64,000 nt of DNA from Bugula neritina (Eukaryota > Animalia > Bryozoa): positions 9,763,751 through 9,827,750 of the forward strand of contig OZ037773.1 of NCBI GenBank assembly GCA_964035545.1. The letters are read 5' to 3'. The position numbers and the translations under genes are program-made. Every line of letters begins with the position of its first letter. The stretch's first letter is position 1. This document shows positions 10,601 to 57,200 of this stretch, in pieces. The notes beneath the pieces are model-generated. The model did no database searches. It saw nothing but the letters and a program-made list of their open reading frames with translations, and had not been told where the DNA came from.

Positions 10601-13600
10601 TATACACATGCCCTCTACAATTAGCTTTAGTATATTTCATGTATATTATAACTAATAAATGCACTAGCCAAAATCTAATATCAAACGAGCTTTTATTTTT
10701 ATCTGAAACACATTATAAGTTGAAGTTATTATTTTACTTTATTATTTGTTACCAATATTATTATAGTTGCATAATACTGAAAAAAATTATTTTATAGTAA
10801 TCATTTTGTTTTGTAAAATACTGCTATAATAAAAATATCTCTTCTAAACGAGGGTAAAGGGGAATTTCAATCTTGTTATTGCAAATTTATTTTGATTAAA
10901 ACACACAGGACTGCATTGTATTTGAGACGTAAACCTAACAACTGGAAGAGTTGCTAGGTTGCTGTCAATCAGATGTCTAAAGTTGACTTTTAATTCTATT
11001 AAAAATTAATCGAAAGTCACTGCAGTTTAATATTAAATGCTAAAAACTATCATTGACAGCTTGCATATAATATGAAAAATAAATGTGATTTCATGGAACA
11101 GTTTATGAATTTACCTGTGCATACAAATATGACTTTCACTAACCCCTTGAGATTAAATATATATATGCAGCTCCTTCAGATCTCATTATTTATTTACAGG
11201 GCAGATAACCAACGCAGCATGGCAGCATAAATAATAAATTCATAAATTAGTGTTACGAAGAAATATCCTAAAGTTACACGTCATTAAAATATTGATTATC
11301 TGGTTGTGAACATTCTACACCATCAGTGAGAGAGTACTTTAATTATGTATAATGTGGAATAATTCCGTTTGATCAAAATTTCGTTGTTTAAATGCGTTTC
11401 CTAAACAAATTTATTGGAAAGTATTGTCTAGGATTATTTTATTGACATATGTGAGCAATATGTGAGATATATAGAAACAGTGTAGATTGTCAATAGAATA
11501 GGTTCCTCACCTCTCCTTTAGACAGCAGCTCAACTAATCTTCCACTCATCTGTTTACCAGAAGAAAGAACCTGTGAGTCAGAGATGGTGTCATTCAACTC
11601 ATAGCATATTCCTGCAAACATTATGTCATTTTATTATTATAACAGTGACAGTTAAGTTTAAGCTGCAGCACTGAAAAACAAACTTCAAATTATCAAATTT
11701 TGCCAGCGCAAAAATTCTTTATTCCTGCAAACTTTGTTTCTCATAATTGAAAACGGAAAAATAAATTGAAGTAAAACTTGGGATAAGAAACTAAACTGCA
11801 TTGTGTTTTTGTTTTAATTGATGTTGAAGTCAAGCAGCTTATAGATAACTGATGCTTACATATCCTACTCCACTGGTGCATTACATAATACACATAATAT
11901 TTTAAATTAGTTTGCAATGTAGAAAAAGTGACAGTATTTGATTCTATTGTTTACTGTAAGAAGCTAGTTTTAGCTATATAACCACTACCTAGCTTTGCTG
12001 GAATGAATCTAGTTTGTGCTTTAGTATACAAGTTAGAATTATTAAAAATTTACAAATATTGAGTATAAGCTGTCAAAATCAATTTTTTGTGACTCAAATT
12101 TAGAAAAATTTTTAACTCTCAGCAGTTACTTTTGTGTCGACAACACAATACATATGGATATCATAAATAAATAATTTATAAAGCCTCAATTGATTCCCTG
12201 TAGATCCATCATGACGTACAACATTTAATAATATATAATTCAGTCGCTTTTTTTAAAAATAAGGTAGCCAAGTTTTGAGCTATATTATATTGCGTTATTC
12301 TATGTTTTATTCAATCTATGAGAAACGGAAAAAATTAGAAAATATTTAAATCAAACCACATATAGTACTATATTTTTTAAAGATTTCACTCCAAAACTAA
12401 GGTTTTATGCTACATATATCTGTATAAAGTAATTCAAAGTGTTTTTTATTATATATAAAATGTTATATATATAAATATGCTTTAGTAGAAACATAAGTTT
12501 CTACTATTGCAAAGGTGTGGGCCATGGTACTCTGTTCTGTGCTGATGAGGGGACAAACCCCGAAACAGCTGCTGTCCACAGATTGAGGTATATATATATA
12601 TATATATATATATATATATATATATATATATATATATATATATATATATATATATATATATATATATATATATATATATATATATATATATATATATATA
12701 TATATGTGTGTGTGTGTGTGTGTGTGTGTGTGTGTGTGTGTGTGTATATATATATATAAACCAACAATACACACAATGCATTTTCTGGATTACAGCAATA
12801 TGATTCACTCCGATTAATTCATTAAATGGAAAGACTTGCAAAGTTAAGATAACTAAATGTGGCTAAAAAATATTGGTGTGATGTTTCAGTTTATTATAAT
12901 AGTTTTTATCTGCTTGCTGTAAATAAATACACTCTTCTTTTGCTTTCAAGAGTATATTTTTATTCATTAATTACTGAATTTTTTTTACTTATACAAACAT
13001 AGTATACTATAACAGGTTACCTTGACTGCTTTCAAACACAGCAACACATTTCGAAGGAAAATTGCCCAAACAGTTTATTACACATTCTAATAAACTTCTT
13101 GTTGAATATTTTCTGGCTATGGCAGAATCACTGGTGCTTAGGCTAACATTTGTTAACACACGATTACTCAATCCACAGTCTGGTAAATCTACAAAGTAGA
13201 ATAATTATAATAAAAACTTGAAACATTAACCCTGATGAAATATTTGCATCAATGTTTTAAAACGTTTTGAACAAGAGTAACGCACCTTTAGTAATTTCAA
13301 GCATTTTAAGGTTTATTTTATTTGAGTTGAACCATTATATAACAGATATGGTGGGGGTATCTTCAAATAATAGCTTCTGACATGCATACAGCAATATGAT
13401 GCACAGTAATATACTGCGTGTGACCGTCCCCAACTGATATTATATTGTAGTTTTGGTGCATTCAACTAAGAGATGTACTTGATGATTTATTGTGGAAATA
13501 TAAAAAATATTTGTCTAACATCGTTTAATAAAAGTATTTTTTGCATAATAATACACTATCGTGTGATATATTTAACTAAAAACTTTTTGCAGATCTGATT

Positions 13601-54200: not shown

Positions 54201-57200
54201 CTGAGAGCTATTCAAACTTTTAGTTTTCTATCTAAGAGATTGCACAGTCATGCGTTCTAATCAGAATGAATACAATAATTTTATAAGAGTTCCTTTATCA
54301 AACGTTAAACTCGTTTGGCAGTGCAGCCCTCTTTTGTCACGAATTAAAAAGATAGTTCACAGAAATTCGAATTCATGCAGAACTATTTCATAAATAGAAT
54401 TATAGTTATAACAATAGAAAGTAACAAAAAATTGCAGGCTTCAGATTTTCTAGAGATTAAATAAAACAAAAGAAAATAAAATTAGTGACCAGCATTATAC
54501 ATTTGTATAAGATACCATTATTAAATCCCTAAAATATTGTAGACCATAAAAATATTAGTTAAATGCAAATTTTTTCTCCTTTAAATATTTACCAGGAATC
54601 AAACTGCACCGGGCGATCCTGTTCCGATAAAGAGTTCTGTTTCAAAGGATGTGGAGGGACTGTCTTGGAGAATGAAATATGTTTAAGTGAGTTACATGTA
54701 TAAGACCTAACTATATATATTACATGTGTGTTGCAGTAGCTATAAAATGACACACAGTGAGTTATTAATTACTACGGTTAGTTTTATGTTACCATGCACA
54801 ATTGAAAGCCACATGAAATTTTGTCAACAAGCAATAAGAAATTCTTAATCAATTGAAGGCATAATAATATAATGGCACAATAGTTTTTATAAAGTGAATT
54901 TTTTTCTCCATGATATATTATATACATGCAATTTTTAAATAATATTTAGATGATAGCTAAAATATATATGAGTCTCCTATAATTGAACTGTATATATAAA
55001 TGCATGAAGTTCATTATAGGGTATTGTTTGAGGTTTGAGAGAACAGAATAATTAACAAAATGCTTTGCCTGTGCAGTAAATATCTGTTTAAGCAGCTATA
55101 TTTTTATGATCCTATGTAACAGTCTATTGAGCCGAATTGATTATCAAGATAGTTTTTATCAGCTAGGGTTTGTCTTTGATGCATGATCATTACATTGAAT
55201 ATGTCATCGGTCTATAATATCAGTGTTGGGCCCAACAGCAATTATTAGTACACTAATACTTAATGCCTCTGCAGGTGACCAACAGAAAGAGTGTAATCTG
55301 GATGGAGAGTATGCTAACATCAGACACTACTGGGCAGGTGCTCTATGGATTATTAAAAGGGAAGGTACAGTAATGGTAAGATATCCTACGCACTAACAAA
55401 ATAAGTTGCAATTAGAAGCTATGCCAATAAAGCCTAGATAAATAATTATAAGGAAATACTTTAAAGAATTTAGCAAAAATGGAGAGTGAAGATTGAGAAG
55501 AGAATAACTTGCTTGTAATCCACACGTCATTAGTAAAGTTCTGTAACAAAATGTTTGATATTTTTATAAAAGAAAAACAGAAAAGGTGAAACTACAGAGT
55601 ATGTTTTATAAATATTTTGTTTGATCGAAAGTGGAAATGATTGCAACAGTAACAAATAATTTTATACTCATTAATATCAAGCTACCATATTTTACAATGT
55701 TTTCATTGCAGAACTTTGGCATTGCACTATAAATGCCTAGTGCATCACAAAAACTAACAACTTAAGAAACATTTTAGAAGACGATATACCCAAAATTCCA
55801 AGCTGGTTCGGGGCTGAGAGTGATCATTCACATGCCTGGAGCAGCACGTATTAGTAATCCTGACAAATGTAACCACTGGTACCTGACGTTTGATGGTGAC
55901 TTGTGTACCAACCCAGACAACATTGAGATGCTGGACTACAGTGCCTCCAGTGGAGATTTCAACAGAGAATTTAATCGTAAGTGCTTTGTTTTCAATTTGT
56001 TAAACTCAAATTGTGTAACATGTTTCAATGTTAACAAACTTAAAGAAACTTTTGAGTTTTATTCATCTGCTAAGGTCAATACTTTAGCTCTACTTGATGG
56101 ATAAACTATTAGGAGTCCATATGCATATATTATAGTTGATGGAACATGCTATGGACTGGATGCTGGTGAGAGAGTTGTAGAGTTGGTAGTTGGACCATGC
56201 TATGGATTTGAATCTAGCGATACTTTTTCACTTGGCTCTGACACAGCCACGGCCATGTTGATTATGGAGATGGTGCCAATGAGTATCACTGCAGGCAAGC
56301 TTAGATACAACCTACTGGTGATTAAAACATAATTGTATATGTATATATATATATATATATATATATATATATATATATATATATATATATATATATATAT
56401 ATATATATATATATATATAATGTAGTGTGTTCAGATTGTTAATGATACATATATATTTTATTTAAAAAATCTTACACGACTATATAGTTTCGTGCAGTAA
56501 ACTGCACTCCTCAGGTGTTAGACTAAAAATAAATAAAGTCTATGAAGCATACCGATTATTCAAATTTTTACATAAAGAAAATTATCATGCTAAACACAAC
56601 GTAAAACGAAATGCAAACATAGTAGTGGATTTGGTGTTATCTATTAATTAGTTAAATTAATTAAATTGCTCTTTTTCTAAAGGATTAAACTATAAAAGCT
56701 AGATGTTTGATGGAAAGGCTAATTTATAATAGGTAGTACTATGGTTGAGAGTTGTTAGTATTGTTATGTGATGTTGCCCAGGTAGTGCTTACGTGCATGT
56801 CTGCATGTGGATAGAATTTCATTTCTGTTATTAAGGGAAGATTTGCTGGGCTGGTATATTATGAAATATTTTTCCCATAGGCAGAGGTTGCATCTTTTAG
56901 TGACTTTGTTGTATGAGTTGGTCTTTTTCATAATTTTCCATGTTATGCTTTAGTACAACTATAACTTTTACTTTTGTGAAGGTGTGGGCCATGGTACTCT
57001 GTTCTGTGCTGATGAGGGGACAAATCCCGAAACAGCTGCTGTCCACAGATTGAGATATATATATATATATATATATATATATATATATATATATATATAT
57101 ATATATATATATATATATATATATATATTATATATATATATATATTTATATTTATATTTATATATATACATATATATATATGTATATATATATATCTTAT

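Follow-up and report, generated by a model that had tools for sequence, protein, structure and literature searches.

A 64-kb window of the Bugula neritina genome, by which we mean the whole stretch of DNA analysed here, contains three short, related pieces of about 115 bp that each carry a hammerhead ribozyme. Are these a small mobile element in their own right, as a preliminary description of the locus proposed, or parts of something larger, and how are they copied? All three pieces belong to a single 272-nt repeat, non-coding and hammerhead-bearing, which is a non-LTR retrozyme, and no separate mini-element is involved. The animal retrozyme is a known kind of element, and the B. neritina repeat is a non-LTR retrozyme family of at least 437 copies. 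It inserts into (TA)n microsatellites, as the resident Penelope-like retrotransposons (PLEs) do, and target-primed reverse transcription of the Penelope type is the most likely way in which it is copied. Overall, one near-full-length and two 5'-truncated copies of this retrozyme, with a mechanism that we infer, probably give the best explanation of the locus.

Hammerhead copies and their neighbours in the window

The three related copies reported earlier were recovered at 12472-12591 (+), 15704-15822 (-) and 56944-57058 (+), and a 30-mer taken from them has exactly three matches in the window, compared with none in 100 shuffles. As described, all three end directly in (TA)n, although such tracts make up only 4.1% of the window. 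Copy 1 is a solo 5'-truncated copy of 120 bp (positions q153-272 of the 272-bp unit, 99% identical to it), with a 10-bp hairpin, a hammerhead core from 12542, predicted cleavage after GTC at 12576/12577 and the tail CACAGATTGAGGTAT. Its 3' end adjoins a (TA)n tract followed by (TG)n (12592-12705). The 5' side of copy 1 is likewise TA-rich.

Copy 2 is a nearly full monomer of 260 bp (15704-15963, -; q13-272; 98% identity), with its hammerhead core at 15719-15753. Its homology extends 144 bp farther upstream than noted earlier, up to 15963, so the start attributed to all three copies is not common to them: only copies 1 (q153) and 3 (q157) begin near TATGCTTTAG, within 4 nt of each other. The (TA)n tract on the 5' side of copy 2 (15964-16019) also adjoins the 3' end of a 5'-truncated PLE of family A (16020-17586, -). 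The ORF of this element (16282-17586) contains an RT motif (YRDDG), a Cys-rich linker and GIY-YIG-like motifs, and is followed by its own distinct hammerhead (16128-16168) and a tail that ends in (TA)n. An inverted second arm (17531-18295, +) holds the C-terminal part of the ORF to 18112 and a hammerhead at 18229-18269, and then runs into (TA)n. The two arms are thus head-to-head, each with its 3' end toward (TA)n.

Copy 3 (56944-57058, +; q157-272) belongs to an older subfamily with 92% identity, in which a helix II G-C pair is changed to G-U and the 10-bp hairpin is degenerate. It is joined head-to-head to a 5'-truncated fragment of a third PLE family, PLE-C (56424-56943, -), consisting of the last ~58 codons, the 3' UTR and the tail. 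This fragment has its own hammerhead at 56478-56514 and is 99% identical to a PLE-C copy at another locus (L018). The joint has 4 nt of microhomology (CATA/TATG) with no (TA)n between, and both 3' ends of the chimera face (TA)n, at 56360-56423 beside PLE-C and at 57059-57130 beside copy 3. The elements at 16020-18295 and 56424-56943 belong to PLEs, whereas the 272-bp unit, which has no ORF, does not.

The ribozyme and the 272-bp unit

The complete hammerhead with a GUC site and the 10-bp hairpin (UAGUAGAAAC/GUUUCUACUA) that had been described are present in all three window copies, the hairpin in degenerate form in copy 3. Each copy has a complete type I core (CUGAUGA, helix II GGGG/CCCC, GAAA and GUC/C, the slash marking the cut), a short, palindromic helix III (CAGCUG) and a helix I 3' strand of CACAG..GAG followed by TAT and (TA)n, giving the common end ...CACAGATTGAGGTAT. 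All conserved positions are in place, namely C3-U4-G5-A6-N7-G8-A9, G12-A13-A14, the G10.1-C11.1 and A15.1-U16.1 pairs and an N-U-H cleavage triplet, and only two core variants recur (N7 U>C, and helix II G-C to G-U). Three helices can be drawn, with helix I open and formed by CUGUG/CACAG plus CUC/GAG across an internal loop. When the entire cleaved monomer is folded, helix I closes the molecule, which is strongly self-paired (MFE -107.3 kcal/mol vs -72.6 +/- 4.5 for shuffles; z -7.8). For helix III, the predicted duplex energy is -15.5 kcal/mol in a dimer, compared with -1.2 in a monomer. The covariance-model check proposed earlier gave no support, since the Rfam hammerhead families fall below their gathering threshold in the window and the sole match in E-value mode is RAGATH-1-hammerhead (15.2 bits, E = 3.7). 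The ribozyme call is therefore based on motif and fold.

Genome-wide, the unit is 272 bp long with a GC content of 45%, and occurs in head-to-tail arrays of 2-5 units at many loci as well as in solo copies, at hundreds of dispersed sites. For example, locus L005 has five units inside (TA)n with a 272-bp period and 99-100% identity. Tandem arrays had been named as something to look for, and they exist, although with this period. The lack of an ORF also holds, with no open stretch above 49 aa in a trimer of the unit, and no terminal repeats were found besides the unit itself. With one type I hammerhead per repeat, no coding capacity, no LTR, PBS or PPT and a highly self-paired monomer RNA, the unit agrees with metazoan non-LTR retrozymes, described as AT-leaning (GC below 50%) head-to-tail repeats of 150-450 bp in the passages considered here of Cervera & de la Pena 2020 (PMC7229834).

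A 47-mer spanning hammerhead and tail, searched with at most three mismatches, has 437 matches in the 216-Mb genome and none for a reversed control; a first look had given 838 candidates. This corresponds to ~0.13 expected matches per 64 kb, so that three copies in one window reflect a local cluster and not the norm, in contrast to the high genomic abundance first deduced from them. Copies that are 98-100% identical lie at dozens of dispersed sites with unrelated flanks on all nine large contigs. Four RNA-labelled runs, one of them a definite oligo-dT RNA library, also yielded contigs that match the unit, in some cases across head-to-tail joints; these are contigs only, displaying no molecule ends and not separating circles from transcripts of tandem arrays, and DNA carry-over is a further possible source.

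Insertion ends and truncation

A census was made of 69 insertion events from 60 loci among several hundred, with the best-matching, and hence young, copies chosen. The 3' end is at q271-272 in 65/69 events (...GUC followed by CACAGAUUGAGGUAU), and flanks of at least 80% TA are present on the 3' side in 58 and on the 5' side in 39. Solo truncated copies account for 35 events, solo full-length copies for 10 and multi-unit insertions for 24. The 5' starts are scattered from q1 to q237 and the ~116-120-bp form makes up 6/69 events, which contradicts the fixed 5' end that had been set against random truncation. Microhomology at the 5' joints averages 1.53 nt, where the null gives 0.69 +/- 0.12 (0/2000 simulations reached the observed value), and TA microhomology is enriched at these joints generally.

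The preliminary description had regarded variable 5' ends extending into a PLE ORF as the sign of plain truncated PLE remnants. The ends do vary, but they extend into the non-coding 272-nt unit: in no case among the 69 does the unit give way to an ORF, and full-length copies enter the 3' end of a preceding unit. Solo pieces of ~116 bp that adjoin (TA)n in the B. neritina genome should accordingly be read as truncated 272-bp units and not as a separate element. A solo truncated copy has one hammerhead and no upstream cut site and is therefore unable to release unit RNA, so such copies are probably dead on arrival.

Links to Penelope-like elements

All four resident PLE families seen (A to D) have (TA)n at their end and a hammerhead of their own, and they differ from one another and from the unit in both hammerhead and tail. 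Their identity is indicated by homologues and Atlas clusters that carry RVT_1, GIY-YIG and HTH_animal; a Pfam scan of the neighbouring PLE sequences themselves gave no match. The genome holds many PLE copies, including ORFs without stop codons (open frames of 700-717 aa). At 8/60 loci a PLE ORF fragment occurs no more than ~3 kb from the unit, and two of the three window copies have one beside them, although this co-location could partly reflect a common preference for (TA)n rather than common machinery. Direct chimeras are seen in copy 3 with PLE-C, in L063, where the 3' UTR of PLE-B is joined to the unit at q43 and an inverted unit pair is also present, and in L045, where the unit stands head-to-head with a different hammerhead element. 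Beyond the ribozyme core, the unit has no detectable similarity to the 3' UTRs or tails of families A to D. A common tail of the kind familiar from SINE/LINE pairs is thus lacking between the unit and these families, and none of them stands out as a specific partner.

Alternative explanations

Could a discrete mini-element of ~115 bp, with a defined 5' end, nevertheless propagate as such? Copies 1 and 3 do start within 4 nt of each other, and eight copies genome-wide begin there in a (TA) context; however, 125 copies read on upstream through this point, and copy 2 is 260 bp long. The start coincides with ATAT at q156, the one place in the unit where A and T alternate for 4 nt or more, and in copy 3 it is the microhomology joint to the PLE fragment. 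Three short copies with different flanks (window copy 1, L017 and L075) have in common the q153 boundary and a G>A change at q192 that has only three exact matches in the genome. A truncated copy within (TA)n could in principle be copied again without a change in its apparent boundary, and these three hint that this may have happened now and then. Against a mini-element, two other short copies (L043 and L066) lack the variant and break 3 nt away, and no spacing of 110-130 bp, and hence no mini-array, occurs among the 100 hammerhead positions listed of 437. An independent mini-element is therefore unlikely; of the retrozyme-like parasite first proposed, what stands is a non-autonomous, hammerhead-bearing repeat at the (TA)n target of PLEs. 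Harder still to credit is an origin of the copies as simple 5'-truncated leftovers of an autonomous PLE whose 3' UTR (pLTR) bears the unit hammerhead. In its favour, 5' truncation and a terminal-repeat hammerhead are typical of PLE insertions (PMC4209133, PMC8557442), copies 2 and 3 each have a PLE fragment next to them, and unit probes recur with a ~2.59-kb period at C9:2730551-2738484, where a repeat of PLE size might be concealed. Yet no event among the 69 passes from the unit into an ORF, full-length copies run into a preceding unit with a 272-bp period, families A to D have different hammerheads and tails and UTRs with no similarity to the unit, and neighbouring PLEs are set apart by (TA)n or head-to-head, not collinear with the unit.

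Spread at the DNA level, by unequal crossing-over, segmental duplication or reinsertion of excised circles without reverse transcription, would fit the tandem arrays and the whole arrays duplicated locally in L012 and L058, and local amplification has been invoked for retrozyme arrays (bioRxiv 10.64898/2026.07.22.740005). It appears very improbable as a general account, given the near-identical copies with unrelated flanks on nine large contigs, the invariant 3' end with graded 5' truncations, and the chimeric joints at microhomologies with sequence derived from PLE RNA. A retrozyme as described here but copied by a non-PLE reverse transcriptase, such as that of a LINE, is also improbable, if less so. 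The PLE enzyme is a candidate, and the unit has no tail in common with families A to D. Nevertheless, the unit goes into (TA)n as all four PLE families seen do, and its insertions have PLE-typical architectures, with full units preceded by a partial one and with arms inverted head-to-head. It is also joined directly to PLE-B and PLE-C sequence, and its end shows neither poly(A) nor a tail of LINE type.

Comparison with known systems

Animal retrozymes are thought to depend on PLEs, but published support is mainly co-occurrence and homology to frog pLTRs, and the mechanism of mobilisation is stated to be open (bioRxiv 10.64898/2026.07.22.740005). Like the B. neritina family, vertebrate retrozymes are proposed there as non-autonomous PLE dependants, namely pLTR derivatives, on the basis of co-occurrence and pLTR homology in Xenopus. 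The B. neritina family differs in having no homology to PLE families A-D, its link consisting of target, insertion architecture and chimeric joints. It resembles the metazoan non-LTR retrozymes of PMC7229834, as far as the passages considered extend, in its lack of ORF, LTR, PBS and PPT, its highly self-paired RNA and the presence of hammerhead-bearing PLEs in the same genome. Unlike them, it is mostly solo or in short arrays (no more than five units in the sample) and strictly inside (TA)n; it also features 5' truncation of the target-primed type and chimeric PLE joints, and in RNA-labelled runs it is represented by contigs. The words 'microsatellite' and 'truncated' gave no match in a term search of PMC7229834, and the passages considered describe no (TA)n insertion, 5' truncation or PLE chimeras.

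Dimeric hammerheads and PLE hammerheads have been described (PMC4209133), as have the microsatellite bias and inverted structures of PLEs (PMC8557442). The 272-nt family is like these PLEs, which have a C-terminal GIY-YIG nuclease, in its hammerhead near the 3' end, its 5' truncation and inverted 5'-truncated arms, the partial tandem copy upstream and its microsatellite bias, (TA)n being reported for the Neptune and Naiad clades. It differs from PLEs in lacking an ORF and UTR similarity to the resident families, and its hammerhead is of the 'canonical metazoan' kind (helix II of 4 bp, helix I of 5-6 bp plus an internal loop) whereas the PLE type is minimal with a long helix II. SINE/LINE partnerships and L1 twin priming offer a further parallel: in them, target-primed reverse transcription acts in trans on a non-autonomous RNA, copies are 5'-truncated with microhomology where the 5' end is joined, and inverted arms arise from priming on both strands. 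Unlike in those systems, the unit has no pol III promoter, poly(A) or shared 3' tail, and the two arms of a retrozyme chimera derive from different RNAs. As a young family (98-100% identity), it offers a clean insertion anatomy, in which an invariant 3' end lies in (TA)n, 5' truncation is graded and accompanied by microhomology, arrays call for a template that is circular or multimeric, and PLE chimeras are direct. Together with the many stop-free PLE ORFs in the genome, this makes the hypothesis of trans-mobilisation testable.

Proposed mechanism

Transcription of an array would give multimeric RNA, in which neighbouring hammerheads may associate by way of the palindromic helix III and cleave the RNA 3' of GUC, releasing highly base-paired 272-nt RNAs that a host ligase could circularise. 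Two rearrangement joints, in L005 and L016, begin at the 5' end predicted for such a cut (C/ACAG), which is indirect evidence for it. A PLE protein (RT plus GIY-YIG nuclease) would nick a (TA)n tract, and the exposed TA end would anneal at the UAU-UAU unit junction and prime cDNA synthesis from RNA in circular or multimeric form. More than one round of the template would yield arrays and an early stop truncated copies, whose cDNA 5' end would be joined where it matches the TA tract; the sole ATAT of the unit, at q156, may in this way produce the recurrent ~116-120-bp form. If the second DNA strand were primed on a different RNA, head-to-head chimeras such as copy 3 with PLE-C would result.

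A more speculative and rather doubtful pair of linked ideas is that the ~120-nt unit end is a sufficient cis module for Penelope-type copying, and that PLE integration complexes can hold two RNAs. The candidate module is the last ~120 nt, comprising the 10-bp hairpin, the hammerhead and the GAGGUAU tail. If the module reading is true, transcription and renewed copying of a truncated copy in (TA)n could reproduce its apparent boundary, and the three-copy lineage with q153 and G>A would be a trace of this. If the two-RNA reading is true, different RNAs would serve the two strands of one (TA)n target, and the head-to-head joints would be the first structural record of one PLE complex using its own RNA and that of a retrozyme.

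The 272-bp unit

The short hammerhead-bearing pieces in the window are portions of a longer non-coding repeat of 272 bp, here called the unit. The preliminary description had reported three of them and read them as a ~115-bp mini-element. Three related copies are indeed present: copy 1 (12472-12591, +), copy 2 (15704-15822, -, as first delimited) and copy 3 (56944-57058, +). They can be aligned across ~116 nt, copies 1 and 2 being nearly identical and copy 3 showing ~92% identity, and a 30-mer taken from them has exactly three matches in the window versus none in 100 shuffles. 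A search of the 216-Mb Bugula neritina genome, in which the window is C9:9763751-9827750, with copy 1 returned 838 first-look candidates, and many of the best matches lie exactly 272 bp apart. The tandem arrays suggested for checking were found, with five head-to-tail 272-bp units of 99-100% identity lying within a (TA)n tract at locus L005. The ~116-nt form corresponds to the 3' part of the unit (q153/157-272, where q is the position in the unit; the reference is a single genomic unit from L005, not a consensus). Copy 2 runs further upstream in unit sequence, to 15963 (q13-272, 260 bp), and the common start proposed for all three copies is therefore wrong for this one.

The unit has a GC content of 45% and no open stretch longer than 49 aa, even as a trimer, in line with the absence of an ORF noted earlier. 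Its tandem, non-coding organisation, GC content and strong self-pairing are the traits that define metazoan non-LTR retrozymes (PMC7229834). Across subfamilies, the unit looks modular. For example, one subfamily related to it (variant GAGCACTCTGG, 271-bp period, e.g. C1:32009450-32010038) has q106-152 and lacks the hairpin segment. At C9:2730551-2738484, outside the window, probes for q5-51 and q147-173 each give four matches spaced ~2.59 kb apart (2584-2592 bp) instead of 272 bp; this could reflect higher-order repetition or a composite of PLE size that contains the unit.

Genome-wide distribution and insertion sites

A 47-mer covering hammerhead and tail has 437 genomic matches at up to 3 mismatches (218 + and 219 -), while its reversed control has none. 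High abundance had been deduced from three copies in 64 kb; because the genome holds only about one 47-mer match per 0.5 Mb, these three form a local cluster and are no measure of abundance. A census of 60 non-redundant loci comprised 69 insertion events: 35 solo truncated copies, 10 solo full units and 24 multi-unit events, the last usually with one partial unit upstream and full ones after it. The 3' end falls at q271-272 in 65 of the 69. The downstream 20 nt are at least 80% TA in 58 events and at least 45% TA in 67, and the upstream 20 nt reach 80% TA in 39. Within the window, (TA)n tracts of at least 12 bp make up only 4.1% of the sequence.

The 5' end is not fixed. Starts spread from q1 to q237, with minor recurrent classes at q112, 136, 153-157, 174-177, 186-189, 226 and 237, and the short form first described (q153-157) accounts for 6 of the 69 events. 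Genome-wide, unit sequence lies directly upstream of ATATGCTTTAGTAGAAAC in 125 cases and (TA)n in 8, contrary to the uniform 5' end expected of a discrete element. Match counts of unit probes (84, 311, 172 and 437) were considered as a truncation gradient and rejected, as segments common to related subfamilies keep them from declining steadily towards the unit's 5' end.

Recurrence of the ~116-bp form

The unit contains a single alternating A/T run of at least four nucleotides, the ATAT at q156. In events with a TA-rich upstream flank, a mean of 1.53 nt at the copy start continues the TA pattern, against 0.69 ± 0.12 nt for random breakpoints, and the observed value was reached in 0 of 2000 simulations. 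A recurrent ~116-bp start is therefore to be expected if microhomology guides the joining of truncated cDNA to (TA)n. Copy 3 starts at a joint with 4 nt of microhomology (CATA/TATG) to a 5'-truncated PLE (Penelope-like element) on the opposite strand, with no (TA)n between; the cause here is different from (TA)n joining, and the logic is the same.

The idea of a defined ~115-bp element keeps some force in one lineage. Copy 1 and two loci elsewhere, L017 and L075, have the identical q153 boundary and a G>A substitution at q192 amid unrelated flanks, L075 carrying two further substitutions. This substitution has only three exact matches in the genome, the third being a full unit in L028. Either one source gave the same truncation repeatedly, or re-copying started from a truncated copy within (TA)n; the latter is possible but unproven.

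Hammerhead motif and predicted fold

The complete hammerhead with a GUC site noted earlier can be read in all three copies as a type I core with all helices. Helix I pairs a 5' strand CUC-UGUU-CUGUG with a 3' strand CACAG-AUU-GAG; the core CUGAUGA is followed by helix II (GGGG-ACAAA-CCCC) and GAAA; and helix III is short, built on the palindrome CAGCUG, with the cleavage triplet GUC|. Downstream of the helix I 3' strand, each copy continues with G-TAT and a long (TA)n tract, as first observed, and the 10-bp hairpin is likewise found in all three, degenerate in copy 3. Infernal searches with the Rfam hammerhead models, proposed as a check, gave no usable match in the window (gathering mode) or in 12400-12620 (E-value mode). 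Since these models make no call, the assignment as a putative ribozyme rests on motif and folding.

The computed helix III duplex is far more stable as a dimer (-15.5 kcal/mol) than as a monomer hairpin (-1.2 kcal/mol). This is the arrangement published for metazoan type I hammerheads that lie in tandem repeats and work as dimers (PMC4209133). Starting from the predicted cleavage site, the unit folds at -107.3 kcal/mol, compared with -72.6 ± 4.5 for shuffles (z -7.8), and hammerhead helix I closes the predicted molecule. Hammerhead variation among the copies compared was too slight for testing selection or covariation.

Penelope-like elements and their joints with the unit

In the window, a head-to-head pair of 5'-truncated copies of family PLE-A occupies 16020-18295. 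Its inverted arms each have their own hammerhead, and these are opposed, with (TA)n on both sides facing both 3' ends. After the hammerhead, the tail measures ~27 nt in the right arm versus ~108 nt in the left. A fragment of a different PLE family lies at 56424-56943. The PLE-A ORF reads in translation as YRDDG, a Cys-rich linker and GIY-YIG-like motifs. A local Pfam scan of the window PLE ORFs gave no RT or GIY-YIG match, nor did a local Pfam-A scan of full-length, stop-free ORFs of 707-714 aa (L046:46-2187, L072:1100-3220), even at E <= 1, and a PDB sequence search with PLE ORFs found no match. Because these searches gave nothing, the PLE identity of the ORFs rests on translation motifs and on the domain content of homologues. 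The homologues and nearest Atlas clusters carry RVT_1, GIY-YIG and HTH_animal domains, database homologues of the L046 and L072 ORFs are annotated PF26215, PF28514, PF01541 and PF00078, and the best named homologue is from the bryozoan Watersipora subatra. Annotators of the Bugula neritina genome should note that a local Pfam-A scan missed these PLE ORFs despite annotated homologues.

The genome contains at least 866-982 PLE ORF candidates in several families with 45-55% mutual identity, many of them with uninterrupted reading frames of 700-717 aa. In the four families with readable 3' ends, PLE-A to PLE-D, hammerhead and tail differ per family and all end in (TA)n. In PLE-B (L072:754-1000 vs L072:3380-3547; L016:1280-1390), the 5' side carries an inverted copy of the element's own 3' terminal region, with the hammerhead on the opposite strand, and in 5'-truncated PLE-B copies the cap is formed by this same inverted tail piece of ~130 nt.

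At 8 of the 60 loci, the unit has a PLE ORF fragment no more than about 3 kb away. Joints without intervening (TA)n tell more than such proximity. Copy 3 is joined head-to-head to PLE-C in this way, and at L063 a piece of PLE-B 3' UTR runs directly into the unit at q43, next to two units in inverted orientation that share a breakpoint at q205. At L045, the unit (q63) stands head-to-head with a 5'-truncated other hammerhead element, with (TA)n at both 3' ends. This other short element (CTGAAGA...GAAAC...GTA|), also in (TA)n, occurs at L045:2520-2840 and L077:1840-1990 and belongs to a separate retrozyme or PLE-tail family; at L045 its sense copy is accompanied by 68 nt of its tail in inverted orientation.

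Unit insertions fit the published hallmarks of PLE insertion in their partial upstream copies, inverted arms and microsatellite target (PMC8557442 describes partial upstream copies, inverted 5'-truncated arms and microsatellite bias). A partner PLE was sought among families A to D by UTR comparison and none emerged; as the unit has no detectable sequence in common with their UTRs, no particular partner is named. The unit-PLE relationship appears to be functional, not one of recent derivation. Non-LTR retrozymes and their presumed PLE dependence are already published (PMC7229834; bioRxiv 10.64898/2026.07.22.740005), and the unit is a further case. What is added here is an answer on the mini-element question, the microhomology statistic and the chimeric joints with PLEs.

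Proposed mechanism and RNA data

In the proposed mechanism, unit arrays would be transcribed, and adjacent hammerheads would dimerise via helix III and then cleave. Monomers would be ligated to circles. A PLE nuclease would nick (TA)n, and the TA 3' end could anneal at the UAU-UAU unit junction, giving the fixed 3' end. Full units and arrays would need a circular or multimeric template because cleavage to a linear monomer leaves q272 just 15 nt away from its 5' end. Solo truncated copies contain a single hammerhead and no upstream cut site, and copies 1 and 3 are for this reason most likely inert.

Two rearrangement joints, in L005 and L016, begin precisely at the 5' end predicted for the ribozyme (C|ACAG), a pattern compatible with template jumping off the 5' terminus of self-cleaved RNA. 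The joints at the predicted cleavage product read …ggtactC|ACAGATT at L016:1770-1830 (-) and …tatgctctC|ACAGATTGAGG at L005:2330-2350 (-). At the L016 joint, the whole ribozyme has been removed.

Unit contigs occur in four RNA-labelled runs from four studies, labelled as symbiont, biofilm and seawater metagenomes; one of these is without doubt an RNA library made with oligo-dT. Several of the contigs wrap head-to-tail, though as contigs they carry no information on molecule ends, strand or level. The unit is thus present in RNA libraries, and these contigs do not demonstrate circles or cleavage.

Other features of the window

Copy 2 is directly adjoined by a tRNA-Cys(GCA)-like sequence at 15573-15645 (+), near-identical to one at 22772-22842 (-) that Rfam matches at 34 bits. 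ARAGORN reported neither sequence, though Rfam found one; the two may be tRNA genes or members of a repeat of tRNA origin. The ORF at 8826-9782 (-) matches the CTHRC1 C-terminal domain in Pfam (E = 1.9e-12); it is an exon of a host gene, consistent with an animal genome.
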